A stretch of DNA of 64,000 nucleotides from Geosiphon pyriformis uo1. Taxonomy: Eukaryota > Fungi > Glomeromycota. Location: NCBI GenBank assembly GCA_016748015.1, contig JAAOMT010000200.1:742984-806983 (forward strand). Direction: 5' to 3'. The translations under genes were made by a program, and so were the position numbers. Shown one piece after another: positions 1-40,700 of the stretch. Numbering within the stretch: position 1 is the stretch's first letter; the number at the start of each line of letters is the position of its first letter. The notes beneath the pieces were generated by a model. That model ran no database searches. It worked only from the letters and a program-made list of their open reading frames with translations, and was not told the DNA's origin.

Positions 1-620
1 TCAATGTTTAACTTTAATCCTGCTTTTTATAATCATTGAAAAACTTCTCACAAGTGGATAAGATAAACTTTAAAGCTTGGTAAGTATACATCAGTGTCAT
101 CAAGATAAACAACTACTGATTGCCATAAGAGTCTTTTATATACAACATCTATGAGTTGTTGGAATGTTGCTGGTACATTGCAAAGTCCAAACGGCATAAC
201 ATTAAACTTATAGTTCCCTCCTTGAGTGGTGAATGCTGTTTTGAGTCAGTTTTTTGGGTTCATTTTGACTTGCTAGTATCCACTTTCCAAGTCTAAGATT
301 GAGAAGAACTTAGCTTTTCCTAGAGCATCTAGCATGTCATTAATTCTTGGAAGAGGATAGACATCTCTAATTGTAATACTATTTAATTGTCTGTAGTCAA
401 CCCAAAATCTGATTTTTCCATTTTTTTTCTTAAATAGAACTACTGGTGAGGCCCATGAACTTCTTGATAGTTCAATTAATCTATTATTGAGCATTTTTTG
501 GATCTTCTCTCTAATAAATTAGTGGCTAGCAAGTAAAACACAATAGGCTTGTTGTCATTTTGGTGAAGCATTTCCTGTGTGGATTTGATGTTGAACAATA
601 TCAGTTTTTCCAAGATCATT
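1..620 (-). pseudogene. Gypsy reverse transcriptase (N-terminal part, interrupted)
   Basis: ORF 273-494 SSWASPVVLFKKKNGKIRFWVDYRQLNSITIRDVYPLPRINDML; downstream VMPFGLCNVPATFQ and VVYLDD. Confidence 0.95.
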
Positions 621-1079
621 GTTGTCTTTTGCAAATATATCTGCAAATTCAGCTATCAGTTGTTTTAATTGTCTTTGTTGTTGGGGTTTTAAGGGACCCA
701 TGTTGATTTGAGAGAGTTTTTTTTCTAACAGGTGATAGTTTTCAGTAATAGGGGTGATGTTTGAATTTGAAAGTAGAGTATGTCTTATAATTTCGATGAA
801 ATTAGAGACAATTTGAGAGTTTTCATCTTAGAAGATATTACTGTGTATGATTCCAATTTCTAATTTATTTAATAGAACAATAGGATAATTATTGGGGTTG
901 TAGAATATAACTCAAAATTTTTTTATTTCTTTGAGAATATAAACGTTTGGAATTGAGATTTCATGCTTTAAACAGATTTGTTCATTGGATTCAAAGATTT
1001 GTTGGGTAGTGGTGGGTTTTGAGCAAGTGTAAATTTTGTGATGTTTACCAAAAGATGAAATAGTAATTGGTTGGGGAAG

Positions 1080-1580
1080 TTAAAGAATCTGGTGGGATTC
1101 ATTCTGTGCATTGAGAGCTATGTTTACTGGCACTGTAAATCGTTCAGTTGAACCAAAATCTTGAGTTTCTCTTTCACTTTTTTCCAATTGTTCTCTGTTC
1201 TTTACTGATTGTAAATCCAAAATGTTGATTAAGAGTAGGTAAATTGCTTGGCCAATTTTCTCAACATGTTTAATCCTAAATGGTTTGTCTGTTTCATTCT
1301 GTAACATGATAGTAATGTTTCCAGTATATCCTGCATCTATAATTTTTTCTCTAATGTTGATTCTTTTGCTTGTCAATAATAATCTGAATGCAATTTAAAC
1401 CATTGCTCCAGGTGGAATTTCAAGAACAATTTTAAGATTAATTTTTGTTAAGGACTTTGGTTGGAGAACCAAAGTGTCTTTGCCAGAATATCTGAGGTTA
1501 TATCCTGCATTAATTTCGTGAGCTTTTTCTGGTTTTATTCTTTTTCCATTGTTGTCAAAGTATTTGAGTTGTATAGTAGA
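1080..1580 (-). pseudogene. Trimeric dUTPase domain within Gypsy pol
   Basis: AGYNLRY (motif I, DAGxDL), IIDAGYTGNITIML (motif III), KIGQAI (motif IV), ERETQDFGST (motif V, RGxxGFGST) in ORFs 1395-1643 and 1080-1376. Confidence 0.88.
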
Positions 1581-2599
1581 CTGGTTTTTAATAAAATAGA
1601 TTGGTATAATTGCAATTTCTTCTTTTGTTTCTAGTTTTCTCAATTCAATTTCTTCCTGGTTATTTTTGCTGAGTAAGGAGATGCTAAGAGCATAGCATTC
1701 TGGACATTATTTGTTATCACAAGGCATGATGCATTCTTTATACAATTGAATGTTCATTTGCTCTAATCATTAAATTTGAGCTTCTTGGGTTGGATATATG
1801 TGGCTTGCAATTTGGTGGTATATCTCTACCTTATCTTTATAGTTGAATTCAGCTAATTCTATTGTATATTCAATGTACTCATCTTTTTTTATTTGGCAGA
1901 CATCTTCCTGTGTGGCTCTATTAATTAAAGCCATTGCTAAATTAAAGATTATTTTAGCATCATGAGAGTAGTGGTAAAGTTTGTTGAGAGCACTGTTATA
2001 TGCTGCATTAAATAGTGTTCCTTTTTTCACTTTTTTCGAAATTGATAGGACATATTAACAGATTTGGTCACATACTCCTTCTCTCATTGCAACATCAATC
2101 CAGTTGCATTCTTTTGGTAGTATATCTCTACATGTGAAACAAGGTGTATTATCTCATTTTCTATTTCTTTTTGGGGATCTAAATCGTTCTTTATGACATG
2201 CTTTACAGAAGTAGCAAGTGCGAGTTTCATATTCCTCTTCTGGAAAAATACAAGCTCTCATAGATGAAAGCTTTTTCTTGCAATCTTTGCATTTTAGTAG
2301 GATGTATAGTGGTTCTTTTTATGGTTCTGGTGTGAAATATTTAACTTTTTTCCATCCTCTTGATTCTTCAAAAATCTCTTGTTCTGTTTCTTCAGCTCAA
2401 TTGGATGTTGATCCAAGAGCCATGTAGGTTTTAGTGAGTGGTATTTCTTTTTTTTCTTTAAATTCAAATACTGGGGCTTTTCCTGAACGTTTGTTGAAAG
2501 TACTACAGGTTGCAGATATTATAGTGTATTGTCCTTAATATGATATTTTGAGTTCCTGAGTTTTTCAATCTAAGTTTGCATTGGCTTTGAAAAGCCAAT

Positions 2600-2900
2600 T
2601 ATTTTCAATCAAAGCTTGGTATTGGGGTGCATTCATAACTAGAACTTTGACTGGAATGGTAATTCCATCAATGGTAAATGAAAAATTGTCAATTTCTTCT
2701 ACTAGTGTCTTTTTCATACCATCTGTTGTAACAATTGCAGTTTGGGCTGGTCTGTCAACAGTTTTTTGAAGCTGTTACATTAACTGGTAGGTAATAATAC
2801 TTCCAGCTAATCCATTGTCTAGAATTAATCAAATGGGTTTTCCTTTTATTGTAGCTTCAGTATACATGGCAGTGATAGCTTTTTGTTCATTAGCTGTTGC
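2600..2900 (-). pseudogene. Retropepsin (aspartic protease) domain
   Basis: AMYTEATIKGKPI*LILDNGLAGSIIT, the degenerate D-S-G flap context, just downstream of gag. Confidence 0.8.
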
Positions 2901-3099
2901 ATTACTAAGCAAAAATAGTAATTTATTTGCTTTAAATTCGAGTGGAAATATATCTAAGAGGTTGGCATTTTGGGCAATTTGAGTTGATAGAATAGTATTG
3001 TTGGAAGAGTTTGATTTTGGTGCTGTAGCTTCATCTTTAAAAAGTGCAGTTTGTTGAAAATCTGATCTTTCAAGCATTGTAAGATAGCTGGGTTGAGTG

Positions 3100-4940
3100 T
3101 GATAGTGATTTGGTCTTTGTTAACCAGAATTTTGGAGAACCAACTAGTTATTTAAGTTGATTCTATTATTATTATTACTGAATTGATTTTGAGGTGTAAA
3201 TTGGTTATGTTGAACCAATCTTCTGGCTGGTACTTGATATTGTTGAGTGGATGGTATCTGATATTGCTGAATTGGTAAAGATTGCTGGTATTGTTGCTGA
3301 ATTAGTTGTGGGGCTAATTGATAATAACTGTTTTGATTTTGTGGTCTTGGTGGATAATAAGTTGATAATGGAGATTAGTAATAAGATTGTTGTGGTGAAT
3401 AGTAATGCTGATTACTCCTGTTTTGTTGGTCTCTTTGTAATTTCTTACAATCTCGTTTTCAGTGTCCTAAAATTCCACAATAATGACAATTTTGAGGTTG
3501 GTTGTTGGATGGTGATTCAAAATTGTTTTGGTTGTATTATTGTGGGAGTTAATATCTTTGTTGTTGTTGGTTTGTAAAGTAGCTTTCAATCTTCTTTGTG
3601 AGTTGGTCTATCTTCTTTTCAGCTGCTGAACTGGTTTCTCCAATAATTAGGTTAACAAGTTTGGTGTGGTTTGCTTCTTTTATAGCCATTTCATAGTTCT
3701 TTGCATGTCTAATGGCAGTTGCTAAGTCTGCTGGTGTATATGAATAGACTTTCTTAATCAATTTGTCTTTTAATCCTGCTATAAACTGATCCAGAATCTG
3801 AACATTAGAATAGTAGTCATTGGTTTCCAATTGTCAAATTCATTGAAAAAGTTTGTTGAATCTTTCAAGATAGATTATAACAGTTTCAGATGTTTCTTGT
3901 TTGATGTTGTGAAAGCAATTGTGGAGAGTAATAGAGGTGTTATTGTCAGTGAATTGTTGTAAGAAAGCATCTTTGAATGCTTGCCAGTTGTCAAATAGTT
4001 CTTCTAAGTTTTCAAACCATTCTCCTGCAGTTCCTTGGAGAAAGTATGGAATTGCTTTGAGCATTTTTGCTGCAGTCCAACCATTTGCATCTCCTGCTTT
4101 TTGAACTTTGTCAAGCCATTTTTGAGGGCTGGTATTATTGTCTTTACCAGTGAATTCTGGAATCTTTGCAATATAAGCAGTTGCCATTTCTTCTTTGTTT
4201 TCTGTGGTTTCTTCTTGTTCTGATTCAGTTTCTTTACTTTCTAAGTTTTCTAAATGATTACTTTTATTTTCCTGTAAGTAATCAATGATATTAGTGCTTG
4301 TTGATATTGGTTTCTGTTGTTGAGTAGGATTCTTAGGTGACTGAAAGTCTTCTAGTCTGGAGAAACAGTTGAGTGGTAAATTTGGTGTTTGTGGTTGAGC
4401 AAGTAAAATTGGAAATGGTGTAATAGAAAGTGGTAATTTAGCACTGGTTCCTTGTTCAGATGTTTGCAAGTGTTTGACAGTTGTTTTTGGTAGTATTGGA
4501 GTGTTTGGAGTGGTTCTTGAGTATTGTTTCACTTTTTGTTTGTCTTTATTGCTTGTTTCTGTTTTTGATTCAAAGTCAAGAGAGTATTTGGACTGTACTG
4601 GGTATTTTTCTTCACAGTACTTAATAATGTTAAAATTAAGTTCTTGGAAGTAGGTTGCAAGAGTTTCACTGTTCAAGTCTTCTGTTTCCAATTGTGAATA
4701 GTGCACTAAATTATTATAGAGGTTGCTTCTAACTTCTGAGATGTTGTAATTTCCAAAAAGATAATTGTTAATATGGTTTTCAATGTATTGGTATACTAAT
4801 TTCTTGAAAATTTCAATTCCGTTTTGGATGTTGAATCTTTGCTTGCAGTGAGTGTAGATTGACTGATAATACTCTAGAGTTATTGTGTTTGGTGTGTTTA
4901 CTACTTTGAAGTTGTTATTGCTGTGTTATTTTTATGGAAG
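3100..4940 (-). pseudogene. Gypsy gag (retrotrans_gag core plus CCHC knuckle, Q/P-rich tail)
   Basis: IPEFTG..WL..AIPYFLQGTAGEWF..WQAFKDAFLQQF..IKQETSETV..YLERF; ILDQFIAGL; CCHC knuckle. Confidence 0.9.
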
Positions 4941-4947
4941 AGCACCA
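4940..4947 (-). promoter_or_regulatory. Primer-binding site (TGGTGCTC)
   Basis: On the minus strand, TT-TGGTGCTC follows the LTR end CA. Complementary to a tRNA ending GAGCACCA-3'; tRNA identity not determinable here. Confidence 0.7.
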
Positions 4948-4949
4948 AA

Positions 4950-5920
4950 TGTTACCAGAGGTTTTTGGTCTCTTTTCTTGAATATTGTTAATGTTGATTT
5001 GCTGTGAATTCACGTTTTTAGAAAGTAGTTGGACCTCCAGTAACTGAATTTATCTTCAAATTATCTTCTATAATTTGAACCACTGGGCTTATAAGTGGAA
5101 TGGCCAATTCCTTGCCAGTTACTTTATGTAGTTACGTTGTAGTAAATGTTAAATTTTTCCCAGGAATTGCTCGTCTGGAAGCTCACTAAAAATGTGTAGT
5201 TACTTTGCTGTAAAAGTCAACTCTTCTACAGGAATCTCGTCTGTAGGCTACCCTAATGATTATGATAAGAAAAGAAAAGAAAAAGAAAAGAAATGTAAAA
5301 GAAATAGAATTTTATCAAAGGAAACGTTTTCTATCCAGGCCTGGAGTCACTACAGTTTATTGAAATTGGTAGCTAATCAATTTCAAAACGTTAGTTGTGT
5401 TGAAGGAATTCAAGTATAATAATTTAAGAATTTGGTTTTCGAATATTTTAATTTTTATTTGATTTTGTAAAAAGTGATTTGTTTCAATTAAGATATCTAA
5501 AATAGGATGCTATGATATGATACTATGAGAAGATACATTTTCTTGAAGAGAGAAGCTCTTCTTTTATACAACTTGTTGTAGTACTAGTCTTTGAATTTGC
5601 ACTTTTCTCTTTGCTACAATTTGGGTGAACTAAAGATACATTTTGGCGAATTTACAAGTTATTTCACTGAACTATTGATTATTTCGGCCAATTTTCATTA
5701 ATTTCGGCGAATTTTGACTATGTTAAATGGTTCAAAGTATTGTGTAATTTGATCATCTTAATTTCTAGAGTACAAATCGGATTATTGATTGAGTAATGAT
5801 ATTTGATAATTTGATTAAATAATAAGTGATAATCGAAATAATAATGATATATGCTAATTAATAATAGGAATTATAAGGGTAATTTCATGCTAATTAATAG
5901 CTAAAATTCTACTGGTAACA
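4950..5920 (-). repeat. 5' LTR (971 bp)
   Basis: Ends TGTTACCAG...CTGGTAACA (9-bp inverted termini); colinear homology and identical length to 9684-10654. Confidence 0.95.
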
Positions 5921-5957
5921 ACGTGCAAGAGAATTGTTCATAATGATTGCCACTCCA

Positions 5958-6079
5958 GATATTCAATAATTTAATAAAATAATAAGTAATAAATTAAAAT
6001 AATAATATATATTAATTAATAATAAGAATTATAAAAATAATTTTATGTTAATTAATAATTCAAATTTTTATTAGTAATA
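5958..6079 (-). repeat. Heavily AT-shifted relic of the same LTR end
   Basis: Aligns to 5798-5920 (e.g. AAATTCTACTGGTAACA vs AATTTTTATTAGTAATA); differences are almost all C>T/G>A. Confidence 0.85.
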
Positions 6080-6699
6080 TTATATTAATAATTTAAACTT
6101 TTATAATACTATTAATAATATTTTTGCTTATTTCTAGATTTTAATCTTAATATAAAAATAAATATTCATAATTTATTTTGACTAAATTACAAATAATTGG
6201 TTTAGCTTTATATTAAGTTTTAATATTTAGTATAATTTTAATTAATTTAAATAATTAAGTTTTTTTTTAATTTTATTAGTTTTATTAACTAAAAATTTAA
6301 ATATATTAAAAAATTTGTAAATGAATTTTTAATTTGTAATTTTAACTTATAAATTATAATAATATTTAAATATATATATATATGCTAACTTAACTAATTT
6401 GGTTTTTGTAATTTTTTATTTTTATTTTATAAAAATTTTATATAATTTTTTATATTTGAATATTGTTTATTTATATTATAGTTTATTAGATTTTGATCAT
6501 ATTTTTTTATGTAAATCTAATTTTGCTATTAAAAAAAATATAAAACTTTTAAAAACTTTTTTTTCTCTTACATCCACAAACCCTCAAAAAGTGCTTTTCT
6601 AAAAAAGAAGTTTTTTTTATTTTTTCTTGTTAGTATTTCACAATTTCTCTTTCTAATAACTCATTTTTCGTAAACCTGAAGGCTGCTTTTAGTGACAAC

Positions 6700-8556
6700 A
6701 TGTCTAGTAAAAAGAGAACACCAAAAGGTGCTTTTCATGGTCCTACAGGTGGCTTTTTCTCACAAAAAAAGAAAGCTGTGCTTGGAAATGTTAAACATTC
6801 CAGTGACGAAAAAAATATCTCTCTGAACAAGTCCAAGTCTGGTGATAATGTGTTTTCTAATGTGAATAGTTTGTCTGGTAATAAAGAAGTTTCTAATATA
6901 ACTGGCATCAATGTTGGATCTCTCTTGAGTTCAGCTGTCAACACTTCTAAAGCAAAACATGTTAATACTGGTACTGCTTTTGGTTCCTCACTTAGTTCTC
7001 CCAACTTTGACATGAATGATGATAAAGAGATGTCTCTTCCTTCTCACCTCTTAATCTCTCTGGATAAAAAGTGGGTTGACCCCAAAATTGTCAAGACTCA
7101 GGTGGAGGTTTTAGTTAGGCAATCATCTGCTTTGGACATTAATTTTTTGGTTGTAGAAGAGAAATTGGTAATGGCAAAGACTTAATTTGTTAGAAAAATT
7201 TTTTTATCAATTAATGGTTTTAAGGAGGCCACTACCCCCTCAAAATTTGAAAAGATCATCAGATTTACTTTCACATCAAAGAGCAGCATGAAAAAAACTG
7301 TGTTATTGGCCAAGGAAAAAGAGATCATCATAAACACTAATTTCAAGAAACAAAGAATTCATTCAGATCAGGCTGTGGTCATCAAGAAAATTCTCATGAA
7401 CATGCCAAAGAATATGATCGTCACTGCACTGGCTGAATTTGGTAAAATTAAGTCAATCAAAATTCAACTTATTGGATTATGGCAAAAAGCTGTGGTAGAA
7501 TTTGCTAAATTAGATCAGGCTAAACAATTGGCTGCTAAATAGTTCTTCTTAATTGGTAAAGATTCAGTGCATGTGATCATAGCTGTGGGTGATTGTGAGA
7601 CTTGGACATTAAGAAATAGGTTTAGAGTATTGCTGTTTACTTTGCCAATAAGAACAACTGCTCATGATTTGGGCACTCTTTTGGATGGGACTAGTGAGAA
7701 AACCTGTGTTATTAATTGCTCAATAGATTCTGACAACTGGGTATACTGTATTGTAGTTGGTTTTGAATCTAAGGAGGATTTGGAGTCTGCTTATTGCACT
7801 GAGCTAATATTTGGTGGTGTTAAATTATCTTGGACTAGATTGAACTTGGTTTACTGTGAAAAGTGTGAACATTTTGGCCATTCTGCTCTGGAGTGTAATG
7901 TATCATCTCTGCTCATCTCTAAGCCCTTAAGACCTGTTAAAAGAGTTCCTTTAGAAGACTATTGTCTCTGGCTGGCGAAATTGTATACTAGGAAGGGTGT
8001 TCCTATTTCTAAACCTGTTGTTTTTGGTGGCAAATCTTGGATGCAAATGGTCTCACTTGCTTCTTCTAGTGGCCCTTATTTCGACTCTGGTTTTGAGTTT
8101 GGTCCTCCTTCTTCTGATTTTTCAAGTATTAAGGGAAGTGCACCAATTGTTCAAAATAAATTCTTAATCAATGATTGTCTAGCTTTATTGGAACATTCCT
8201 TAGAATTACTAGCTAATCAGGTGTCAGATATTGTGCATAGATTAAATGGTGTGGAGCTGGTGCTCCTGGTGCCTATTACTCAAGTTGTACTTTCAATTGC
8301 CTCTGTTTCTACATTGGCATTACCAGATACTGATATGGTTTTGGATATTCCTCGACTGTCCCTTCCTTCTTTTTCTTCAGTATTTGAAGACAAAATAGTG
8401 GATTTGGGTCTGAGCAGTTCAAAGATTCTTACCTCCAAAGTTGGTGGTTTGGAATCTAAGATGATGGCTCTCAAAGTTTCTATTGGCTCAATCTTGAGGA
8501 AGTTAAATTTGCTGTGCATAAATTTGGGTTTTTTGTTGCATTCTTTGCATCAATAA
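6700..8556 (+). pseudogene. LINE ORF1 (RRM-like regions plus CCHC knuckle)
   Basis: ORFs 6700-7185, 7288-7542 and 7567-8556 are one frame broken by stops; knuckle CEKCEHFGHSALEC. Confidence 0.85.
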
Positions 8557-11500
8557 GTGAGCTTATTTGGAGAGTAGCTACATGCAATATTAAGAGTATG
8601 TTGAATTTGGCTAAACAGAAAGACATTGTTCATTGGCATAAGAATTCAGAAAATATGATTTTGATTGTTATTGAAACAAAATTGAAGTCTGACATTAAGT
8701 CTTGGATTATGAATAAATTTGATGAACTTCGGATTTTTACTTCTGGTTTGGATGTTGGGTTTTGTGGTACTGAAGTTGCCATAATTATGAACAATTTTTT
8801 GCCTCTGCATGTTTTAAAAGTGGATGAAATTTCTGGTCATTTGATTTCTGTGCACCTTCTGTTCAAGAACAAGCTTTCAGTTATGATCTTGAATCTGTAT
8901 GCTGGTGTGTCCATTAGCACATGATTTAGTCAAGCTGTTAATATCAATTTTATGGTTTTCAAGACAGTCAATTCCAGCTCTTTTGTGGTTTTGAGTGGTA
9001 ACTTTAATGAAAATGGGTCTAGCAAAAATGTAAGTTTCAAGTTCTGTTTGGGTTTGGGTCTGGTTAATACTTTTGATAGACACTTTTTGACCAAGGCTTC
9101 TATCTGAAGCAATTCTAAAGGTGTTAAAAAAGTGATTGATTTTATTTTAGTAAGTAAGAATTTGGTATCTGCTATGATATCACATTTTGTCAATGATGTG
9201 TCTGAGTTTTTTGATACAGATTATAAGTCAGTTTCTATTTTAATTGGTTTGGATGGACTGCTAGATACACATCTTATTAGCATTCACAGACAAGTCAACC
9301 AAGACCAATGGAAGTTTAAATTAAAAGATGCAGATAATGTTCAATGGTTAAGCTTTAAAGACTGCTCTTCTGCCAAGTTGTTGGCTAGGTCAGACATGTT
9401 TAAGGAGGCAAAAGTCAATGGTAACTTGAATACAATATGGAAAATGTTGGAAAAGGCCATAGTACAGGCTGCTGACACAGTTTTTTCTAGGATTTGGTAT
9501 AGTGAATACAACTGTTCAAAGAATAAACAATCTTCCAAATTTTTTAAATTAAAGCTGCTTGTTGTAAAGGTTGTAAAATGTTGAACCTTTGGTAATCTTC
9601 TGAATTTCAACCATCTTATTAAGGTCTGGTTGGCTATTGATGTAGTTGAAGCTTTCAAGGTTGATGGCATGGTTTTAAACAGTTGTTACTGGAGGTTTTT
9701 GGTCTCTTTTTTTAAATGTTGGTAATATTGATTTGCTGTGAATTCACGTTTTCAGGAAGTAGTTGAACCTCCAATAACTGAATTTATCTTCAGATTATCT
9801 CCTATAATTTGAACTGCTGGGCTTATAAGTGGAATGGCCAATTCCTTGCCAGTTACTTTATGTAGTTACATTGTAGTAAACGTCAACTCTTTCCCAGGAA
9901 TTGCTTGTCTGAAAGCTCACTAAAAATGTGTAGTTACTTTGCTGTGAAAGTCAACTCTTCTACAGGAATCTCGTCTGTAGGCTACCCTAATAATTGTAAT
10001 AAGAAAAGAAAAGAAAAATAAAAGAAATGTAAAAGAAATAGAATTTTGTTAAGAGAAACGTTTTCTATCCAGGCCTGGAGTCACTAACAGTTTACTGAAA
10101 TTGATAGCTAATCAATTTCGAAATGTTAGTTGGGTTTTGGGGATTTTCCAAGTACAATAATTAAAAAATTTGGTTTTTTGAATTATTTAATATTTATTTC
10201 TTTTTGTGTATATAGGAACAGTTTTAAGAGATAAATCTAAAGTAAGATATATTTTTTAGAAGAGAAAAGCTCTTCTTTTATACAACTTGTTGTAGTACTA
10301 GTCTATGAACTTGCACTTTTTCTCTTTGCTCAAATTTTGGCAAACTAAAGATATATTTTGATGAACTACAAGTTATTTCGCTGAACTATTAATTAATTTG
10401 GGTGAACTATTCATAATTTCGACGAATTTCTGTAAATTTCGGGGAATTTTTGAATGTTACAAAGTTCAGAGTATTGTGTAATTTGATCATCTTACTTTCT
10501 GTTATACTAATTAGATTATTTTAATTGAATCGTAATATGTGATAATTGATTAAATAATAAATAATAATTTGAAATGATATTAATATACTGATTAATTATA
10601 GGAATTATAAGAGTAATTTCATGCTAATTAATAGCTAAAATTCTACTGGTAACACAGTGTAAGCTTAATGAAGTTGGTTAAACATTTGTCAATAATAAGG
10701 AAAGAGTATCATAAATCCAAGTATTATGAGTCTAAGATTGCTGAGAATACTGCTATAAGGAAGACAATTGACTATTATATAGAAAACTTCTGTTCTGACA
10801 AAGGAAAGATAATAAAGAGCATTCTGGAATATTCATTTTACAAGATGGTTTTGGATCACTTGGTAGTAGATGATGAGCTGGTAATTGAGCTTAATAAAAT
10901 AAAGCTTAAGGTTGATAAAATTATGGAAGGGTGGACAAAAAAGTAATTAGTTCTTTCAAAAATACTTGATTTTTGGATTCAACAATATATGCATCTGAAT
11001 TATGTAAATGATAATGCTTTTTCTGATATAATAAATGAAATTGGTATGGAAGAATTGTTTTTGATTGTTAATAATCTGCCAAACAATAAAGCAGCTGGGT
11101 TATTAGAGATATCTAATGAACTTTGGAAGCATTGTGGTGGAGAGGTTTTGGCCTGTCTTTTGAATTTGTTGAATTTGTGTTTGAGTATAAGTGTAGTTTC
11201 TAATTTGTGGAAAGAAGTGTGGGTTTCAATAATTCCAAAATTTATGAGTGGAATGGTGTTTTAACAAATACTAGACCTATTGCATTAGTCAAAACAACAC
11301 ATAAGATACTATCTAAGATCCTATTTGATTGGATATCTTTGACTTGTAGCAAGTTTAATGTTCTTCATGTGACAATTTTTCAGTGTTGAAGGGTACTTTG
11401 ACCCAGTCTCCTATTTTTGCTATTGGCTCAGTCATTAAGAATGCTCTGAAGAAAAACAGAGAGCTTTGGTTAGTGCTGCAGGATATGCACAAAGCTTATG

Positions 11501-14215
11501 ATTCAGTAGACTGGCATCATTTGCAAATGGACTTGCATTGCATCAAAATATGTGAACGTTTCATCCAATTTTTCAGCAACATTCATGAGAACTGGGTCAA
11601 CAAGGTGATGACTGACTTTGGGCTTTCAGATGGTTATAGAATACATGATGAGTTGGATTAAGTGGAGGTCTTTTCTTTACTGCTTTGGAAGATATTTTAT
11701 GATCTATTTTTGTGTGAAGTGAAAAGGCATAAACACTTATGTGGGTATAGAATTGATTCTAAGTTTGTAGCAAAGTCTGGCAGAATTGAGGCAAGTGAAG
11801 GAAAAACTTCCTTTTTGGCTGCAGATGCTTTTGTTGATGATATGATTTGGGTCAAAAGTAGTTAGGCATCTATGCAGTATATTTTAAACATTGCAAATGA
11901 ATTTTTTGTGATCAATAACATCTCAATTAATAATAATAAAACAGTAGTAATTTCTATCAATCAGAGAGTTAAGAATGCTTTGCTATTAATCAATGGATTG
12001 CCGATTTTAATTGCTAAAAAGAGTGAGTTACACCAATATTTGGGTATTTTTCTGTTAACTGAGAGTTTTTCTAAGCCCAGTTTGGCTCAAGCCCATAAGG
12101 ATATTAGGTTTTTTTCTAATATAGTGTTAAGAAAAACTATTATGAACAAACAATTCTGTTATTTGGTTTTGGCAGTTTTGCAACCCATTGTTAGCTATCA
12201 TATACAGTTCAGTTTTGTTACTTTAGATGTGTATCATAAGTGGGATATCATGATTAGAAAAGGTTTTAGAGCCAAAGCTGGTTTACTGTGTGACTTTCCC
12301 AGTAAGATTTTGCACCACCCTTCTTTATATGGTTTGAAGCCCTTTGAGCAAGTTCAGTTTGAAGGAAAGCTGGCATTACTGATTTCATTTTCTAATGGCC
12401 ATAGCATTCTTGAACATTTATTTAATCATAAATTTTTGAATTTGCAAGTTCTGGGATGGTCTCCTTTAAATCCTTTGCAATTTCTTATTAAGTTGCATGT
12501 TAGTTTTGTAAACAATTTTTTGGCAGAGGTAGTGAAGATTTTTTTGGAGAATGAATTATCTTTAACAAACAATTTACCTTGTGCCTTTCATGGGTCTGGT
12601 GATTTTCCAATGTCTGGTATTCTAGATTAGTCTTTGTATTATAAATCCGTTTTTCATTGAAGCATTTTGGTATTGCTTTTGGTGACAGAATTCTTGACAA
12701 GAAAGGAAAGGTAATAAACTGGAAAACATTTCGGCATTGGAAGTAATTGGACCTAAAAGACCTTGTGCCTTACAGGTTTTTTTTGACATCTGATTTTATG
12801 AACAATTCTGTTTTTTTGGGGGTTAAAGCTGCTACTACTACTAAGGAGGATGTGTTAAGTGTTTTGGATTCTAATAAGTTCTCTGAAGTTCATAATAGTC
12901 TACTGGAGGTGTGGTCTGATTGTATTGAAATTTATACAGATAGATCCTTAAGATATGTTGGTTCTGTTGAGGTGGCAGGTGGAGCAGCTGCATACTTTCT
13001 GGCTGCAAACACAGGCATTAGAGTTAAGATTACTGGACTTTTGTCCTCTACTTTAACTAAACTGCAAACTATGGTGTTGGCTTTGAAGTGTGTTCCATTT
13101 TCATGCTCAATAGTTTTGTATTTAAATAGCCAATCTGTAATTGATGCCTGTATTTCCGAGGCTTTTTTGATTACACCTGACTTCCATAATCAATGTTGGA
13201 TCAAAAGATTGCAGATAGTTAATCTTCTTAAAGACAAGAATATTTCAATTAAGTGGGTAAAAGTTAAAAGACATTCAAATGTATTGGGCAATGTAAGGAC
13301 TAATGCACTGGCTAATGAGACTATTTTCTTGTCTCTTTTTTTGTCAGTTAAAATCTGGAAGAGGTTTCTGGTCACTGAAAAGACTGCCATATCTAGCAAT
13401 ATTTGTCATTTTGCTCAGAACTTATACCAGTCAATATGCTGTGCTTATTGGAAGACTGGTCTAGGTTTTGATATAGTTCCAAATATTATGATTAAGAAAA
13501 TAGATTGGAATGCTACTATGACAATTTGGCATCCTGATTTACACATGTTTTTTGAATTCACCAGTAGAAAGTCAGCCAATTTATGCACGTATTTGATGAA
13601 GATTGTATATAGACAGCTGCTGGTTACAGTTAGAAAAAGGTTGTATAATAGAAGTTATCTTGGTGTTTTGTGTTTGCTGTGTGACGAGATGGAGTTCTCT
13701 AATCATGTTTTTGCTTGTTCTGGTGACTTTGGTCTTCGTGGAGACATTTTGGTTAAAGCTACTGAAAAATAGATGTCAATGTCTGGTCTTTCGAGTTTGT
13801 CTCTATCTGCTGTTTTGCTTTTGCTCTCATTATGTTCTTCGGATGTAAGTCTTTATACAGCAGTATGTAAGGGTTTTGTAATAAAAGATTGGTATGCTAA
13901 AACTGTTTCAGTTTTTGAAAAAAAAAGAAAGCTATTCAAATTCTTGTGAAATATATCAGATTTGTGATGGAGTTGTAGCACACTTGAATATGGACTATTA
14001 AGACCAAGCATAGAGCAAAAATGGAAAAGACTGGCTTGATTGGGGATAATGGTGTGGTTTCTGACTTGTCTAGCAGTATAGTTTTTATGTTGTCAGCTGG
14101 TGTTGTCCATATGTTTGGTGTTATAGAATCTTTTGCTATTAGGTTTGATAGACACAAATTGTGTCATTTTTTCTTTGGTTTGGATGGTGATGCTTTTGTT
14201 ACCATAGGTGTGTAG
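8553..14215 (+). pseudogene. LINE ORF2 (endonuclease, RT, RNase H, C-terminal Zn knuckle)
   Basis: ORF fragments 8514-14215 with domain motifs in order; removing the solo LTR plus one TSD restores ...GMVLNS|VSLMKLVKHL. Confidence 0.92.
9684..10654 (-). mobile_element. Solo LTR of the Gypsy family, 4-bp TSD CAGT
   Basis: TGTTAC...GTAACA, 971 bp, homologous to 4950-5920; CAGT at 9680-9683 and 10655-10658; no internal domains. Confidence 0.95.
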
Positions 14216-15949: not shown

Positions 15950-17450
15950 TAACTAAAATAATTAAAAAGTTAATAAACTTAACAATAAATTTAATTAAAA
16001 CAACCAAACTTAAGATTTGAAATTCCAAAGAGTTCAATCTAATTTAATAACAAAATTAGCAGCAAATATTACTAAAAAAACAGCAAAAAAAAAACAAAAA
16101 GATAAAAATTTTAATATAAGACTTTTACTAATAAAAAAAATACAAAAGATCTGAAGCTAATAACAAATTTAATAGACAACTTAAAAGATAAAAATAATAA
16201 GATTTTGTAAATTTTAGACAAGTAGTTCAAGTTTTAATATTTATAACAGTAATAATAATTAAAAGTTTTTCATTAAATATAATATTTATACAAAGTACCA
16301 GTTTTAATAACAGTCAAATTTAAAGATTTATAAGAATTAAATATTATAACAACAAAATATTAATCATAATAAGAATTAAAAAAATAAAAATAAAACAAGT
16401 AATATTATTAATTTGAAAATTTATATTACTAATTTTAAAAGCAATATAACTAAAAAAAAATTGATTAATTTAGTTTTAAATATGTTTCTTAAGATAATAA
16501 CTTTTTTTTAATTAAGAAAAAAAAACCAAATATTATCTTTTTTTATTAGTATAAACTAGTAATTAAAAATAACAACAGCAGAAAAAAAGTTTTTAAAAAT
16601 AACAACAGTATATTATTATAAACCAGCAGATTTTAATTTAACAAAAATAACAATACTAAAAACACTTAAAAGCATTATTAATATCATTAAAAAATATGTC
16701 AAAAAAAATATTATAAAATATGTCAAAAAAAAAGAGCCAAAAGCTATTACAAAAAATTTTGCAATCTTAAATATGATTAAACAAAAAAAATTATTGATAA
16801 TAACATTAATAACAGTAATTAAAAAGACTTTAAAAGCAAAATTTATATAAAATAACTTAATATTGTTTTTGAAAACCAACTTAAGCTCAATAAAATAAAA
16901 CAATAAATAAAACAAAAAATTAACTAAAACCAATTTGATTTTAAAAGTAGTATTAGAGATTATAGTAAAAATTATCTATTTAAAAAATTTTTAATAATTA
17001 AAATTTATTTTTTAAACATTATTAAAAGTAATATTAAAAACCAAAAAAAAGTAATTAATTTAATTTCTATTTAATCAGTCTAATTTCTAAGATTAAGTAA
17101 TTTAATAAGTTGTTTTGTTACTAAAATTGACAATAATCTGTTAAAAAACACCATATTTGATAATACAGTCAATAGTTAATTTTTTAATTACTTGCAAAAA
17201 AATAATAGTAATATTAATAGTAAAAACAGTTTATTAACTGACCTATTGTTAAAAACTTTAAGGTTTTTAAAAAAGATAAAAACAATATTAGGATTAATTT
17301 GAGTGTGTTTTTTTAAAAAAACCTTAACTAAAAAAAAATTACTAGCTAAAAATAAAAAAAAATGCTTCAAAAGCTGTTAAAAACAGCTTTTTATTATTAA
17401 TATTTAAGAAAAATATTGCCAAAATATTTTGCTTAATTGCTTTAACAATA
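15950..17450 (-). pseudogene. Very degenerate retroelement relic, probably LINE ORF1 of a second subfamily
   Basis: Residual coding texture; knuckle relic CYKY*NLNYLSKIYK (~16200-16255) is explicable as C-x2-C-x4-H-x4-C after G>A/C>T; residual KVFNNRSVNKL. Confidence 0.45.
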
Positions 17451-18838
17451 AAAAATTTTTTTTTGTTAAAACTTTATTGGTTACTATAAAAAAAATAATA
17501 TTTAAAACTTTTTATTATTTGTTCTGTTTGTAATTATAAAAATAAAAAACAAAAAAGTTTTTTTATTGTTAAATAATATTAAAATTAATAATTATATATA
17601 TCTAATTATTGTAAAAAATTTTGTACTTAAAAATTAGTCTTTAAAAATAACAAAAATATTTAAAAGCAAATTAGATATTATTAAAAATATTATTAATTTT
17701 ATATATAATATATTTATTTGTTATAAATTAAATATTTAGTTGTCAAATATTAAATTTAAAGTTTTTTATAAAAAACAAAATTTAATTATTAATAATAAAT
17801 TCGTATTATTAGATATTAATAATTTATTATTATGTAATTTTAATACAAATATTTACAAATTGAATTTTAATTATAATATCTTAATTAATTTTGCTTTTAA
17901 TGTTTTTCTATTATTAATGTCTTTTAAATTTTGTTGTAATAATTGTGTTTTTAATAATATAATTTTGTAATATTGTTTTAATTAATTTAAATAACTGATT
18001 ATAAAATAAATAAATAAATTATACTTATTTTATAATTATATATAATTGTATTATAATAAGTAATAATTAAATTGTATTTGTTAAAAAACAAAATTAAATT
18101 AATTTTTAAAAAATTGCAAAAATAAATAAATATAAAATTTTTTTATAAGTTTATAATTATTTGTAAAAAAAATTAGCATTAATATAAATATTATAATAAT
18201 AAGTATAAAAAAATTAATATTTAAAATTCTAAATTAAATAATTAATATATTACAAAATTTTAATTAATTTATAATATAATAAAAATAATTATAAAATAAA
18301 AAACTTTTATTATAAAGTTGTTTTAATATGACAAAATAAATTATAATTATTATAAATTATAATATATTAAAAATTATATATAAACAGTAAAAAGATTTTA
18401 CTTTGTTAAAACAAATAAAAAAAAATGCCTTTTTATTTTCATAATTGTATAATATTTATTCATTAATAAATTATATAATTAAAATAATTTTATATAATTT
18501 TAAGAAAATCTGTTTTTAAATATTAAAATCGAATAGAAATTCACATGTGACTTCATAACAAATTTTATTAGCGAATTTAAACATCAGCTGCTGTTCACAT
18601 TTGCATGACCTTGATCTAAATCTGGTAGTCATCATCTGACAGTTGCATCATAATTAACATAGATAAATACACCATAAATACAACAGCTTAGTCAGCAAGA
18701 CGGCCGATTGAAGAAAAACACACGACTAATGATACTAAGGTCGTGTGAATATCTCTATCAACGACTAAAACGCTCGCCGTTTTTGTATTCATCTTTATTC
18801 GCCGCCAACGCTGCGCGAATATAAAATTTTCGGACGCG

Positions 18839-21800
18839 ATGTCGAATTTCGTATACTTTAATAATCAACAAAAAAGCAACAGGCAAGGCACAGTAACTCG
18901 TTCTTCTTTTATTCGAAATACAAATAACGAAGGTGGTTTAGCTGAGGAAGTAAGCAATGATGATACAGAGCCACCTCAATCTGATGCAACAAAAGTAGTC
19001 GAGCCAAAAGCTACACCGGTGCCAGCATCCGTATCTGTATCTTCGATTGCTGTTCGTCCAGACGAACCCACACTAGTTAATGGTCCTTTGTCTGATCGAA
19101 CACTCCCTGGAGATATAACTTCTCCGACTGCAGCAAAACTTCTAGAAACTGATAGTCTAGTTTTGGAACCCACTAATAACAGCGACAATCTTCAAATAGG
19201 AATCCCCCAAGACCCTAAATACCTGGCCACGCCTACAAATGGCAATAAACAAAGATATGGTAATAAGAAAGGAGTTACGACAAGTTGGGTATGGTCTCAC
19301 TTGAAAAAAGATGAAGTACAAAAAGTTGTATTATGCGAAGTATCCGTGTTGAATAAAGAAGGTGAAAAAGTCCCGTGCGCACATCAATTTCAAATGTCTA
19401 CTAGCACTAGTAATTTAGCTACTCATTTGCGTAGTCAGCATCAGATTTATGACCCATCGAAATCATCTGCACAATCGCCCTCAACCTCGGTTGTTGGCAC
19501 TATTGGAAGTTCTCTGGCGGCGCCAAAACCAATAAGATCGCCCGCAGCAAAAATGACCCCAGCCCCAGTGACCGTGACTCCCCAGCCACAACCACAAGTT
19601 CAGCATTCTCCTCAATTACCGGTTAGCATAAAATTTGAAAGTTCACAACCATTGATACAACCGCCTCCCCCACCACCGCGCCCTCTATTTGTACAAACAG
19701 TGCCCGAGCGAATAAAGATGCATAATAAGGACAAGCATAATCGATTAGTAGCAAAATTGGTAGCTTGGCTAGTTGAAGATTTGCAGCCTTTTAGTTTAAT
19801 CGATAATCTAAAATTTAGAGATTTTTGTCAAGAAATGGATCCTCGTTTCAACTTTCCCTCTGTGAATTCACTTAATACTTTTACTGAATTGGAGCTGGGC
19901 GATTTTATACAATCCACACCCACTCCAGTATCCATTCCCGAGAAAAGATCTGCCCCCAGCACTACATCGATTAATTCATCTGGTGAATCTGTATCACCAG
20001 CCAAACGTCTTAAATCGACGAGCAGTTGGGTTTGGAATCATTTGAAAAAGGATGAAACTACCCGAATTGTAACGTGTGAAGTCCTTGTTTTGAATGAGAA
20101 AAATGAAGAGGTTAAATGTGGACATCTTTTTCAATATTCTACAAGTACCAGCAACCTGGCTTCTCATTTGCGTGGTACACATCGGATTCTTGATGCTAAC
20201 ACGCCTTATACCCCATCACGTGCAACTACTTTACGTTCAAATTCAACTAATTCTTCAACCGGCTTTCGCACACGTTCTACTCCCACGCGAAATAATAGCA
20301 AAATGACTACTGAATGGGCACCATCACCAGGTGTGAGTTATTTGCCGCCCTTATCATCCCCTACCCCCAGACAACATCCAAAAGAAAAACAAGATCGATT
20401 AATTTTCAAAATGGTTGCTTGGATGGTTGACGATTTACAATCATTCGAATTACTGAACAGTTTCAAATTCCGAGAGTTTTGTCAAGAAATGGATGCAAAA
20501 TTTGTAATTCCCTCGGTTGAATCAATTCAACAATTAATAGTTGATTCAGCGAATGGGATTCAAGACAAACTTGTCCATCTTATTCAAAATACAATGACAT
20601 CTTTTAGTTTTACCACTGAGTTATGGGCCCAAAAACAAAACTCATTCATCGCTGTATTTGTACATTGGATATCTGACAAGTTTATACAGCTAAGAGCATT
20701 ACTAGGTGTTGGAATCATGCCTGTTTCTCCGACCGAGGATCAAATCTCAGAAGCCTTGAAGGCTCTTTTCGATAGATGGCAAATTTCCAATAAGTTATTA
20801 GCCACTGTAACAGACAATGCCCAAAGGCCAAAAACCAATCAGCATATTCAAGTTGAAAAAGTGCTTTGTAGTGCACATATTATTCAGCTCTCAATAGAAG
20901 CTGGGCTCAAAAAATGCACAAGTCTTTTGATGAAAACTACTGCTTTAAATGATTTTTTAGTGGATCGTGCGGACAGACATCGTGAAAGATTTTACGGAAT
21001 TCAAGCTATGATTCAGCCGGATGCGCAATTGTATAACGCCGTTAAACAAGAATCCCGAAATTGGAATTCAATTTTCTTAGTTCTTGAACGTCTGCTGATG
21101 CTTCGATCCGCAGCTGAAGTCTTGCAAACTGTTCTTGTGCGCGATAATGATACACTTGTCAAAGCCGATGGTAATGACTTGGCAAAGTTGTTACTCTCTG
21201 ATGAAGAATGGGAGGCTGTTCAAGAATTAATTTATCTATTAAAACCATTCATCCAAGTTACACAGTTTATGGATCTCAACGAAGGATATTCTTCCCTTGC
21301 GATAATGTATCCAACCATATTAAAATTGGTCAAGCACCTGAAGCCTGAACAACAACTATTCAAACAGACGGCAATTCTTGAGGTACAAAAAGAAATTTTA
21401 TCATCAATCATGCATCTCTGGCAAGATCCTCAAACCGTTGGGTTACTGGCTACTCTTTTGGATCCAAGATTCAAATCATTGAACTCAATATCAGAGAAAA
21501 AACGTGAAAAAGCCCACCAGGTTTTGAGAGAAAAGGTGGAGGCGCGTGGTGAAATTGATTCCCCAATTATGATAATCAACAAGCTCCCTATTGATTATTA
21601 TAACCCACTGGCTGCATTTTTTGAGGATGAATTTACTCAGTCCAAAAACCAGTCAGAGGTCGATTTATACCTTCGACTACCTGAACTTCCCAAAACTGAG
21701 ATCAAAGACGCTCTAGAATGGTGGCGAGAAAATGCCTCAAAATTTCCAAAGCTTGCTCTACAAGCACGCACATATTTGGCAACTCCAGGGACGTGTGTTC

Positions 21801-21946
21801 ATTCTGGGCGAGTATTCTCTCTAGATACCGAACACACTGTACTTATCCAAGGAAAAAGGCAACAACTTGATCCAAATTTTGTGCATTATATTATGATGCT
21901 AAAAGAAAACTCCATTTTATTTGAAAACTTAACATATCATTCGTGA
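18839..21946 (+). CDS. hAT-transposase-derived BED zinc-finger protein (ZBED-like, likely domesticated), 1035 aa
   Basis: Uninterrupted ORF, CpG retained. Two BED fingers (WVW.H..C..C..TSNLA.HL..H); two W.V.DLQ.F...KFR.F...D modules; core FTTELW, TDNA, CSAH, RNWNS; LLDPRFK; C-terminal WW..FPKLA..AR.YLA.P.T..SGRVFS. Confidence 0.93.
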   Translation: MSNFVYFNNQQKSNRQGTVTRSSFIRNTNNEGGLAEEVSNDDTEPPQSDATKVVEPKATPVPASVSVSSIAVRPDEPTLVNGPLSDRTLPGDITSPTAAKLLETDSLVLEPTNNSDNLQIGIPQDPKYLATPTNGNKQRYGNKKGVTTSWVWSHLKKDEVQKVVLCEVSVLNKEGEKVPCAHQFQMSTSTSNLATHLRSQHQIYDPSKSSAQSPSTSVVGTIGSSLAAPKPIRSPAAKMTPAPVTVTPQPQPQVQHSPQLPVSIKFESSQPLIQPPPPPPRPLFVQTVPERIKMHNKDKHNRLVAKLVAWLVEDLQPFSLIDNLKFRDFCQEMDPRFNFPSVNSLNTFTELELGDFIQSTPTPVSIPEKRSAPSTTSINSSGESVSPAKRLKSTSSWVWNHLKKDETTRIVTCEVLVLNEKNEEVKCGHLFQYSTSTSNLASHLRGTHRILDANTPYTPSRATTLRSNSTNSSTGFRTRSTPTRNNSKMTTEWAPSPGVSYLPPLSSPTPRQHPKEKQDRLIFKMVAWMVDDLQSFELLNSFKFREFCQEMDAKFVIPSVESIQQLIVDSANGIQDKLVHLIQNTMTSFSFTTELWAQKQNSFIAVFVHWISDKFIQLRALLGVGIMPVSPTEDQISEALKALFDRWQISNKLLATVTDNAQRPKTNQHIQVEKVLCSAHIIQLSIEAGLKKCTSLLMKTTALNDFLVDRADRHRERFYGIQAMIQPDAQLYNAVKQESRNWNSIFLVLERLLMLRSAAEVLQTVLVRDNDTLVKADGNDLAKLLLSDEEWEAVQELIYLLKPFIQVTQFMDLNEGYSSLAIMYPTILKLVKHLKPEQQLFKQTAILEVQKEILSSIMHLWQDPQTVGLLATLLDPRFKSLNSISEKKREKAHQVLREKVEARGEIDSPIMIINKLPIDYYNPLAAFFEDEFTQSKNQSEVDLYLRLPELPKTEIKDALEWWRENASKFPKLALQARTYLATPGTCVHSGRVFSLDTEHTVLIQGKRQQLDPNFVHYIMMLKENSILFENLTYHS

Positions 21947-37799: not shown

Positions 37800-40700
37800 A
37801 TTTTAATTTTAATATAATTAATTTATATATAATAAGTAATTAATAAAATAATATTTATTTTATTTTATTTTACAAATAAGATTTAATTAATAATATTTTT
37901 AATATTAAATAATACAATTATTTATTAAAAACTACTTTTTTATATAAAAAACTATTAGCATTAATTTTTCAAATATTAAATTTTTTATTAATAATATAAT
38001 AAAATTTATTAAATTTAAACAATTTTTATATGTTTATTACATATTTTAAATTGGTTTTTAAAATTTGTAATTAATTATTATTATTATTATTTTTGAAAAT
38101 AAATAAAATTTATTAATTAAAAAAATTTATTAAGTTTATTAAAATATTTTAGATAATTAAACATTTGTATATTACTTATATTATATTATTTACCAATATT
38201 TTAATTATAAAAAATATAGTTTTATCTGTTTTATTTCCAATTTTATATAATAAAAAATATTATAGTATTTTATGTTTTTATTGTAAAAAAATTGAGTTTT
38301 TCAATTATTTTTTTTATGTAAAATAAATTTTAATATTGATAAAAATTATTAGAATCATATATTATTCTGTAAAAATTTATATTAGATCTGTATTTATTAT
38401 TATTTTGTATTTTATAGCTGTTTTATTTATATATATTTGATAATATATTATATATTGTTTTATATAAAAGTTTTGTTTTTAAAAAATAGTATCTAAAAGT
38501 TCTGTCTGTTTTTGGTAATAATAAGATTATTGTTGATAAAATCATAAATTTTTTATATAATTTAAGAATAATTTATCATAATAAAATATAATTGGTTTGA
38601 TTTAAGTTTAAGATAATTTTGAAAAAAAATAATTTAATATCTTGTAATAATTTAATATTTTTTGTTGTTTATAATTTATTATTACTGTTTTTTTAATAAT
38701 ATTATAAAATTACTAAGGTATTTGATATTTGTTTTTGTTTAGCTTAAATAATTAATTATATATAGAAAATATGTAATTGTGTCTAGTTTAGATTATTTAG
38801 TTTGATGTATTATGTTAGATAATATTTATATTTTATTGAAAAATTAATAAAAATAAATAAATAATTAAAAAACTAAATAAATTTTTTGTTTAATTTAATA
38901 TAATTTTTGCTTTATAAAATTATATATTTTTAACATATTTTAAAAAATTAATTATAATTTTTTATTTTTTTCAAAATTTTTTGGTTAATAAATTTATTAT
39001 ATAAATCAAAGTTTTTATTAATATATTTTTTAATATTAAAAGTATTTTATTTTTATTATAAACAATTAAAATATAATTAATAAAATCTTAAATAAAAGTT
39101 TTTTAACTGCTTAAATTAAAGTTATTAATTTAATATTAACAATAAATAAATATATATTTTTGTTGTCTTATTATTTAAAAAATATTTAATTGTTTTTAAT
39201 AATTTATTAAATTTTACTTTGTTTATTAATTTATTAAATGTATTTTTATGAATATATTAAAATAGTTTTTATTAATAAGTCTAATTTAATAACAAAATTT
39301 CAAATTTGCTTTTTTGTTTAATTTAACTTATTATAATTTTGTTAATTTTATTTATAATTTTTTTAAAACTTATTATTAATTTTTTATTATAAATTAATAA
39401 CTTAGAATAATTTTTTAAAATTTTTTTTTTATTTGTAATAAATAGTTTTATTTTTTTGTTAAATACTGTATTTTGTATTAAATTAGTTTTTCTAAATTTT
39501 TTTATTTTAAATTTTTTAATTTAAATATTAAAACATAAAAACTTATAGTTTTTAATTTTATATTTAATTCTTAATATTATAATTTTTTAAAATTTTTTTA
39601 ACTAATAATATTATTTAATTTATTAAAATTATTTATTTATTATTTAAATTATTGAGTTTTCTAATTTAATTAAATACTAAATTATGTAATTTAGTTTATA
39701 TATATTTCTATTTTATTTTAATAAATAAAAGTTAATCACTATTTATTATAATTTAATAATAAATATTTTAAAATAAATATATTTTTGCAATAATTAAAAA
39801 TTATCAGTTATTTAAGCCAATTAAAGTTATATTAAATATTTATAATTATAAAAACATTAATATTAATATTTTGGACTTCACTCGTAAAATATTAATAAAA
39901 AAAAAATAAATATATAAAAAAATAAATAACAAATCTTTTTAGATTTATGCAAAAATTTTTAAATTATTAAATAAATTAATATTATTAAATAACAAATTGT
40001 GTAATTTTAATTTTAATTTAAGCTTAATATATAATAATTATATACTTTTATAATTAGCAACAACCAAATTTTTAACAAATTTAATATTTTTAATATAAAT
40101 ATATTTAATATTACCAAAAAATTTCAAAGTCTTTTTATATCAATCTTTAAACACAAATTTTTTGTAAAAATTATATAAGCCAATTATTATTAACATAACT
40201 ATATAAAAACTTAAATATTATAAATAAGCCAATTAAAATAATTAAATAGAACAGATTAGAAATTTTTATACAAAAAAAACATAATTAAAGAATTTACTTT
40301 GTTATAATACATATATTTAATATTCAAATATAAGAAATTATATGGTTTTTTTGAATAATAATAAATTGTCTTTTATAAATTTGTAATTTTTTTTTATAAA
40401 AATCTTATTTTTATATTATAATTTATTAAACTATTTTTTTAATTTAATATTAAAAATATTTTATAATTAATATTAAAAAATTTTATTATAAAAAAATTTT
40501 TAATATTTTTTAATTTATAATTTTATTAAACTTTTAATAATCTAAAAATTTTTAAATTATAAATTTTAGTTGTATACTTGTAGGTATAAATTTTATTTTG
40601 TAAAGTTTTGATTAAAATTTTTTTTTGAAGATTATTTAATAATTTAATTATTTTATGTTTAATATATATATTTTTTTAAGATTATTATAAATATTGAATT

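Follow-up and report, generated by a model that had tools for sequence, protein, structure and literature searches.

A probable domesticated hAT transposase gene with a duplicated BED and helical head in Geosiphon pyriformis

A 64,000-nucleotide stretch of the Geosiphon pyriformis uo1 genome (assembly GCA_016748015.1, contig JAAOMT010000200.1, positions 742,984 to 806,983, forward strand; hereafter the window) contains one uninterrupted reading frame, 18839..21946 (+) in window coordinates, that encodes a hAT transposase-like protein of 1035 amino acids followed by a stop codon. Is this frame a transposon that can still move, a relic that has not yet decayed or a gene of the host? The first-pass annotation, made from the letters of the window, had read it as an intact 3.1-kb open reading frame (ORF) for a domesticated transposase with a broken active site, and the frame is indeed free of internal stops. 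The analysis described here finds a gene that does not move, is present in one copy and evolves under purifying selection, and whose product keeps the hAT fold with two of the three metal-binding carboxylates replaced. We propose, with a probability of about 85%, that it is a host gene of the Archaeosporales, domesticated from a Glomeromycota-specific hAT element before the split between Geosiphon and Ambispora and now acting as a DNA-binding regulator.

Copy number, orthologs and selection

The single-exon frame is the sole ORF of at least 80 amino acids from 17 to 24 kb of the window and holds a complete hAT transposase architecture, namely a BED finger, a helical DNA-binding domain, an RNase-H-like core with an α-helical insertion and the hAT C-terminal dimerisation domain (hATC). 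As the hAT-derived gene consists of one open frame, it needs no spliced model. A six-frame search of the G. pyriformis genome (128.3 Mb in 792 contigs) returned one full copy, one relic (30% identity, eight stops) and one short match. A search with PF05699 gave 13 hATC matches, nearly all in short frames or with stops, and the ORF described here (1065 codons between stops) was the one long open frame among them. When the closest relative with an intact catalytic triad (P0015) was used as the query, it matched just this ORF and decayed relics.

No terminal inverted repeats (TIRs) were found around the ORF, the inverted matches being merely AT-rich with ∼71% complementarity, and a scan of ∼3.3–3.6 kb on each side for an 8/8 target-site duplication (TSD) adjoining a TIR of 12/14 or better yielded 0 candidates (expectation from shuffles, 0.47). 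The absence of TIRs noted in the first-pass annotation is thereby borne out, and the near-identical copies with TIRs and 8-bp TSDs that it had named as grounds for rejecting domestication did not appear. The gene has neither the multiple copies nor the TIR/TSD pairs of an active hAT transposon.

Two other hAT loci of this genome may be mentioned here. One, at C609:54029-55357 (-), is a decayed relative from the same hAT clade, 30–38% identical and with 4–8 stops, and comes closest in the genome to a relic of the parental family. A different hAT transposase, on contig C788 at ∼259.3–260.8 kb (-), gives the best hATC match of the genome (82 bits); its motifs look canonical (SE.. with the Glu kept, TRWNST and the D2 motif) and it is split over several frames, as an intron-containing or decaying gene would be.

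A word-based protein search placed the nearest proteins in Ambispora (Archaeosporales), in A. gerdemannii and A. leptoticha, with E values of ∼0 to 1e-297. In a three-way alignment the window protein is 65% identical to the A. gerdemannii ortholog and 63% identical to that of A. leptoticha. Both Ambispora genes are uninterrupted ORFs (1207 and 1317 amino acids, respectively) that align end to end with the window protein and share its domain order, its two BED and helical modules and, at the three triad positions, E, D and G or R; the same architecture and substitutions are thus found in two further species. The Ambispora orthologs carry precomputed Pfam matches to ZBED1_RNase-like and ZBED1_RNase-like_helical. 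A profile search of 1.84 billion cluster representatives gave 1923 bits for the ortholog cluster and then fell to 274 bits for the next protein, and no further ortholog was found among the predicted proteins of that library. A metagenome scan with the three-ortholog alignment gave 151 pattern matches and 0 confirmed orthologs. The deposited Ambispora models (998 and 997 amino acids; loci 272-3895 and 5137-9090) excise in-frame Asn-rich low-complexity stretches as 'introns', and the A. leptoticha model additionally drops ∼100 conserved residues from within the insertion domain.

The A. gerdemannii and A. leptoticha loci are colinear past the ORF, through a downstream gene of ∼1290 amino acids, at 73–84% nucleotide identity; the gene has therefore been in place since these two species split. 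The downstream gene is a single-exon ORF of ∼1280–1295 amino acids with no Pfam match, ∼0.8 kb beyond the ortholog in both species (4772-8617 + and 9843-13730 +), and the 1281-amino-acid version used as a query found no match in the G. pyriformis genome. Directly upstream of the A. leptoticha ortholog, on contig CAJVPS010000800.1 at 3771-4706 (-), lies a 311-amino-acid ORF with an N-terminal Resolvase domain and HTH_OrfB_IS605, an IS607-like serine-recombinase architecture that is unusual on a eukaryotic contig.

Selection was estimated between the two Ambispora species (dS 0.31) by the Nei–Gojobori method, with bootstrap 95% confidence intervals (CIs). The ratio of nonsynonymous to synonymous divergence (dN/dS, or omega) is 0.22 (CI 0.17–0.28) over the whole aligned length; the first-pass annotation had named a value near 1, together with a lack of orthologs, as grounds for rejecting domestication. 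It is 0.18 (CI 0.13–0.25) in the folded domains, with 0.15 for the first BED finger (BED1), 0.03 for the second (BED2) and 0.06 for helical module 1, and 0.34 (CI 0.22–0.49) in the linkers plus N-terminus. In the comparison of the window with Ambispora, saturation is reached at synonymous sites (proportion of synonymous differences, pS, ∼0.73), and dN in the domains is just 0.17.

These values bear directly on the possibility that the locus is an immobilised relic, in effect a neutral pseudogene in waiting, as its TE-rich (rich in transposable elements) and extremely AT-rich surroundings might suggest. Against this, frames of 3.1–3.9 kb have stayed open in three species despite saturated synonymous sites, the CI of omega excludes 1, saturated dS contradicts a recent horizontal transfer, and the ORF stands as an island of 40% GC in flanks of 14–21% GC. 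Because synonymous saturation goes with a domain dN of only 0.17, and because the true relics of this genome are full of stops, a neutral relic is excluded; dN/dS and the preservation of the ORF effectively refute it. Since this single-copy gene has been conserved across two families of fungi of the arbuscular-mycorrhiza type, the most likely reading is a host DNA-binding regulator, not a mobile element.

Active site and predicted fold

The three catalytic positions of the ORF are E594 (codon 20618-20620, in TTELW), D659 (20813-20815, in TVTDNA) and G990 (21806-21808, in SGRVFS). A phmmer search against PDB sequences aligned residues 551–1019 to Hermes transposase and placed these residues opposite Hermes D180, D248 and E572, with the CxxH motif conserved. 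The E/D/G reading of the triad in the first-pass annotation agrees with this alignment, and the three positions that it gave (20618, 20813 and 21806) are exact codon starts. The ORF therefore does not carry the intact DDE (Asp-Asp-Glu) triad of an active hAT transposon.

To place the substitutions in the superfamily, filled columns were counted in a 48-sequence alignment of the three orthologs and 45 relatives. The first position (D1) is D in all of 42 relatives and E solely in the three orthologs; at the third (E3), 38 of 39 relatives have E and the orthologs have G, G and R; the second (D2) is D in 48/48 sequences, orthologs included. The orthologs also still have the CxxH motif and W742, the Trp of (R)WNS. 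The active-site substitutions are derived and common to the three orthologs.

A nuclease or recombinase with a non-canonical site, built from E594, D659 and another carboxylate and co-opted for programmed cleavage as in Kluyveromyces Kat1, would be consistent with the carboxylate (E) still present at position 1, with the retention of D2, CxxH and the hairpin-associated Trp, and with the constraint on the core (omega ∼0.2). An Asp at 996, six residues past E3, is shared by the three orthologs and occurs in few of the relatives (3/42 filled columns). However, the alignment puts D996 about two helical turns from the lost Glu, the orthologs have G, G and R at a position that, like D1, is otherwise nearly invariant in the superfamily sample, and D2, CxxH and W may have been kept for structural reasons. 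As no carboxylate is conserved at E3, an active nuclease is weakened as an explanation and we regard it as highly unlikely.

AlphaFold2 was run on residues 389–1035 with the 48-row alignment as input. The model has a mean predicted local distance difference test score (pLDDT) of 83.9 and a predicted template modelling score (pTM) of 0.75. Most of BED2 and of the core has a pLDDT above 90, and the linker comes out as disordered. The insert between the BED cysteines (C-x12-14-C) forms extra β-strands in the model. A search with Foldseek against the PDB gave ten top matches that are all Hermes structures (E values of 9e-17 to 6e-14, target template modelling scores of 0.57–0.69), and the next fold, the P element transposase, reached just 1.5e-3. 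The protein thus combines a Hermes-like RNase-H core and all-α insertion with an hATC domain and an N-terminal CCHH BED finger, as expected of a hAT family member. Among solved structures, Hermes (PDB codes 2bw3, 4d1q and 8edg) is the best match in both sequence and structure, with the same succession of BED, helical domain, core, insertion domain and C-terminal domain. Hermes differs in its intact D180/D248/E572, its TIRs and its single head, whereas the present protein reads E/D/G, lacks TIRs and carries two heads.

The duplicated head, its origin and possible function

The unit formed by a BED finger and the following helical module occurs twice, at residues ∼147–345 and ∼394–563; the two copies match each other with a BLASTP E value of 4e-49 and are 40% identical overall. 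The linkers are rich in Pro, Ser and Thr, so that the twofold module and its linkers stand as first annotated. BED1 is 88–93% identical across species and 61–64% identical to BED2, and helical module 1 is 86–88% identical across species and 55–57% identical to helical module 2. Since each module is nearer its ortholog (86–93%) than its sister copy (55–64%), the duplication is older than the split between Geosiphon and Ambispora. Both copies of the head have been kept, and the extra head is if anything the better conserved. The zinc ligands are C166, C180, H196 and H201 in BED1, where a 13-residue insert separates the cysteines, and C413, C427, H443 and H448 in BED2. A conserved NTFTEL motif after module 1 was considered as a remnant of the β1 strand (TTELW) and rejected; a plain colinear alignment to the beginning of module 2's downstream helix was preferred.

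FastTree, applied to 53 core sequences, groups the three orthologs in one clade (support 100) on a long stem (0.99), with relationships that fit those expected of the species. This clade is sister to hATs of A. gerdemannii, Cetraspora pellucida and Gigaspora rosea in a joint nine-row clade (support 100), and the animal ZBED1/4-like sequences fall apart from it, in a clade of 32 rows; the gene does not group with animal ZBED1/4/6. The spacing of the BED cysteines follows the same division, being 12–14 residues in the Glomeromycota clade wherever the finger is present and 2–4 elsewhere. Nested among Glomeromycota hATs and separate from the animal ZBEDs, the gene represents an independent domestication from a fungal hAT lineage, without orthology to the animal and plant cases. 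Two loci of the sister clade were inspected and each is broken into several short ORFs; around the closest Ambispora paralog, itself a fragmented gene, a search for TIRs found merely short palindromic AT-rich matches.

The sister clade also bears on whether the protein could be a dominant-negative regulator of hAT elements, a dead transposase that binds element ends, dimerises and so poisons or competes with active transposases of the parental family. The DNA-binding heads and hATC are the best conserved parts of the protein, and triad-intact sister-clade hATs are present in Ambispora, Cetraspora and Gigaspora, as this explanation would have it. In G. pyriformis itself, however, the family consists of short, stop-ridden relics that leave little to repress, yet the gene is intact and conserved; the locus of the closest A. 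gerdemannii relative is itself fragmented; and conservation through saturated synonymous divergence exceeds typical element lifetimes. The near extinction of the hAT family in this genome weakens the case for a hAT repressor, which the first-pass annotation had listed beside a transcription or chromatin factor and which we consider improbable.

For the host regulator favoured here, the following picture may be drawn. The substituted triad predicts a protein that no longer cuts DNA. With two heads per chain, probably carried on flexible linkers, and hATC at its C-terminus, it would be a sequence-specific DNA-binding protein, probably dimeric or oligomeric, and its anatomy fits a regulator of transcription or chromatin comparable to ZBED, DREF or DAYSLEEPER. 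Its target sites may descend from the end-binding motifs of the ancestral transposon. The same bivalent chain, together with oligomerisation through hATC, hints at a bolder and rather unlikely possibility, an architectural factor that bridges DNA in the manner of insulators or loop anchors, is specific to the Archaeosporales and would organise gene islands in extremely AT-rich, TE-eroded genomes from sites left by the ends of the extinct parental transposon.

Several points weigh against a host regulator. The D1 to E change still leaves a carboxylate in place, and DNA binding, oligomerisation and nuclease loss are all deduced from sequence. Orthologs are known from just one other genus, in two Ambispora species, and tblastn with the ORF fragments of at least 40 amino acids that lie in the window outside the gene found no matches on the two short Ambispora contigs, whose flanks are TE-rich. 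The count of one full copy in the genome, like the other genome copy counts, is a lower bound. The Pfam scores of the BED finger (19.2 against 20.6 bits) and of the Hermes-type DNA-binding domain fall slightly under their gathering cut-offs. The omega of 0.22 is a Nei–Gojobori estimate from two close species, and vertically inherited active transposases can likewise show omega below 1.

Domestication has repeatedly turned hAT transposases into regulators, examples being the ZBEDs of animals, SLEEPER of plants and Kat1 of yeasts. The parallel with ZBED, DAYSLEEPER and DREF drawn in the first-pass annotation holds as a parallel, without orthology, the tree giving the present gene a separate origin in the Glomeromycota hAT lineage. 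The animal ZBEDs (ZBED1/DREF, ZBED4 and ZBED6) are immobile host genes that, like this one, encode one or more BED fingers followed by an RNase-H-like core and hATC; ZBED4 and ZBED6 have more than one finger. Animal ZBED-like proteins match the window protein at 21–26% identity. They differ from it in that the unit repeated here is the BED finger with its helical Hermes-type domain, not the finger alone, and in that the BED knuckle is C-x13-C here and C-x2-C in theirs. In angiosperms, DAYSLEEPER and the SLEEPER genes (PMC3499209) resemble the present gene in being hAT-derived and single-exon-like, in carrying BED and hATC, in having lost catalytic residues and TIRs, and in being lineage-restricted and under purifying selection. 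SLEEPER proteins, however, have a single BED finger and belong to an expanded gene family, in contrast to the single copy and doubled head of the present gene, which arose in another kingdom by a separate event.

Precedents in fungi are Kat1 of Kluyveromyces lactis, derived from Roamer, and the TIR-free Rover and Roamer copies of the Saccharomycetaceae (PMC4316626). Domestication was recognised there by the lack of TIRs, single copy, orthologs, purifying selection and conserved position, and the same features were considered here; the present gene has orthologs in two Ambispora species, and its omega of 0.22 indicates purifying selection. Kat1 is described as a transposase-derived endonuclease that still uses its catalysis (PMC4316626), whereas two triad positions are replaced in the present protein. 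Kat1 and the Rover and Roamer copies belong to the Ascomycota and the present gene to the Glomeromycota, for which our literature searches found no report of a domesticated hAT transposase.

Domesticated hAT or ZBED-like genes are thus a well known kind; the lineage is new and the doubled BED and helical head is notable. The gene offers a clean independent case, in which the source transposon clade is recognisable, the active-site changes are derived and held in common by the orthologs, and the head duplication is ancient. It also adds a data point on what is retained after domestication, since the parts for DNA binding and oligomerisation and most of the fold have been kept and two of the three catalytic carboxylates lost. 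For research on arbuscular mycorrhiza and on Geosiphon, it is a candidate lineage-specific transcription or chromatin factor.

Feature layout and genomic surroundings

The features of the ORF are collected in Table 1. Of its domains, hATC (PF05699) clears its Pfam cut-off, and the BED, Hermes-type DNA-binding and hAT-like RNase-H matches are sub-threshold.

Table 1. Features of the hAT-derived ORF in window coordinates, with the evidence for each
Feature	Position	Strand	Evidence
Domesticated hAT gene, full ORF	18839..21946	+	N-terminus MSNF... aligned to A. leptoticha start MSSF...; sole long frame among the genome's hATC matches
N-terminal low-complexity region, residues 1–140	18839..19258	+	Poor conservation in ortholog alignment; dN/dS 0.25–0.68
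BED zinc finger 1, residues 147–205	19277..19453	+	Pfam zf-BED 180–202, 19.2 bits (sub-cut-off); 88–93% identity to Ambispora BED1; dN/dS 0.016–0.15
Pro/Ser/Thr-rich linker 1	19454..19714	+	ORF and alignment; dN/dS 0.37–0.51
Helical DNA-binding module 1, residues 293–345, Hermes-DBD-like	19715..19873	+	Pfam DBD_Tnp_Hermes 292–328, 19.8 bits, slightly sub-cut-off
BED zinc finger 2, residues 394–452	20018..20194	+	CCHH columns align with relatives; pLDDT ∼86–95, extra β-hairpin; dN/dS ∼0.025
Ser/Thr/Arg-rich linker 3, predicted disordered	20195..20374	+	pLDDT <50, model residues 68–114; dN/dS 0.35–0.61
Helical DNA-binding module 2, residues 513–563, directly abutting core	20375..20527	+	Module alignments; helices at model residues 127–163
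RNase-H-like core, first half, residues 586–700	20594..20938	+	Hermes alignment, column counts, model β-strands; holds E594, D659, CxxH C677/H680
All-α insertion domain, residues 701–935, with conserved W742 of (R)WNS motif	20939..21643	+	Hermes alignment, columns, model; weak Pfam hAT-like_RNase-H 816–880
hAT C-terminal dimerisation domain, residues 940–1024, G990 at E3 position	21656..21910	+	Pfam PF05699, 37.6 bits versus cut-off 21.4

The earlier description of the gene as lying amid decayed transposable elements was confirmed in part only, by retroelement fragments upstream and by the low GC content of the flanks. The fragments, of retrotransposon gag and RNase H, are found at window positions 3843-4706 (-) and 12747-13769 (+). 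GC content falls to 13.8% at 16001-18000 and to 8.8% at 38001-40000, and is ∼20% over most of 22–42 kb. No part of the sequence was flagged as resembling human DNA. Towards the far end of the window, at 58390-58842 (-), lies an ORF that resembles a cytochrome P450 exon.

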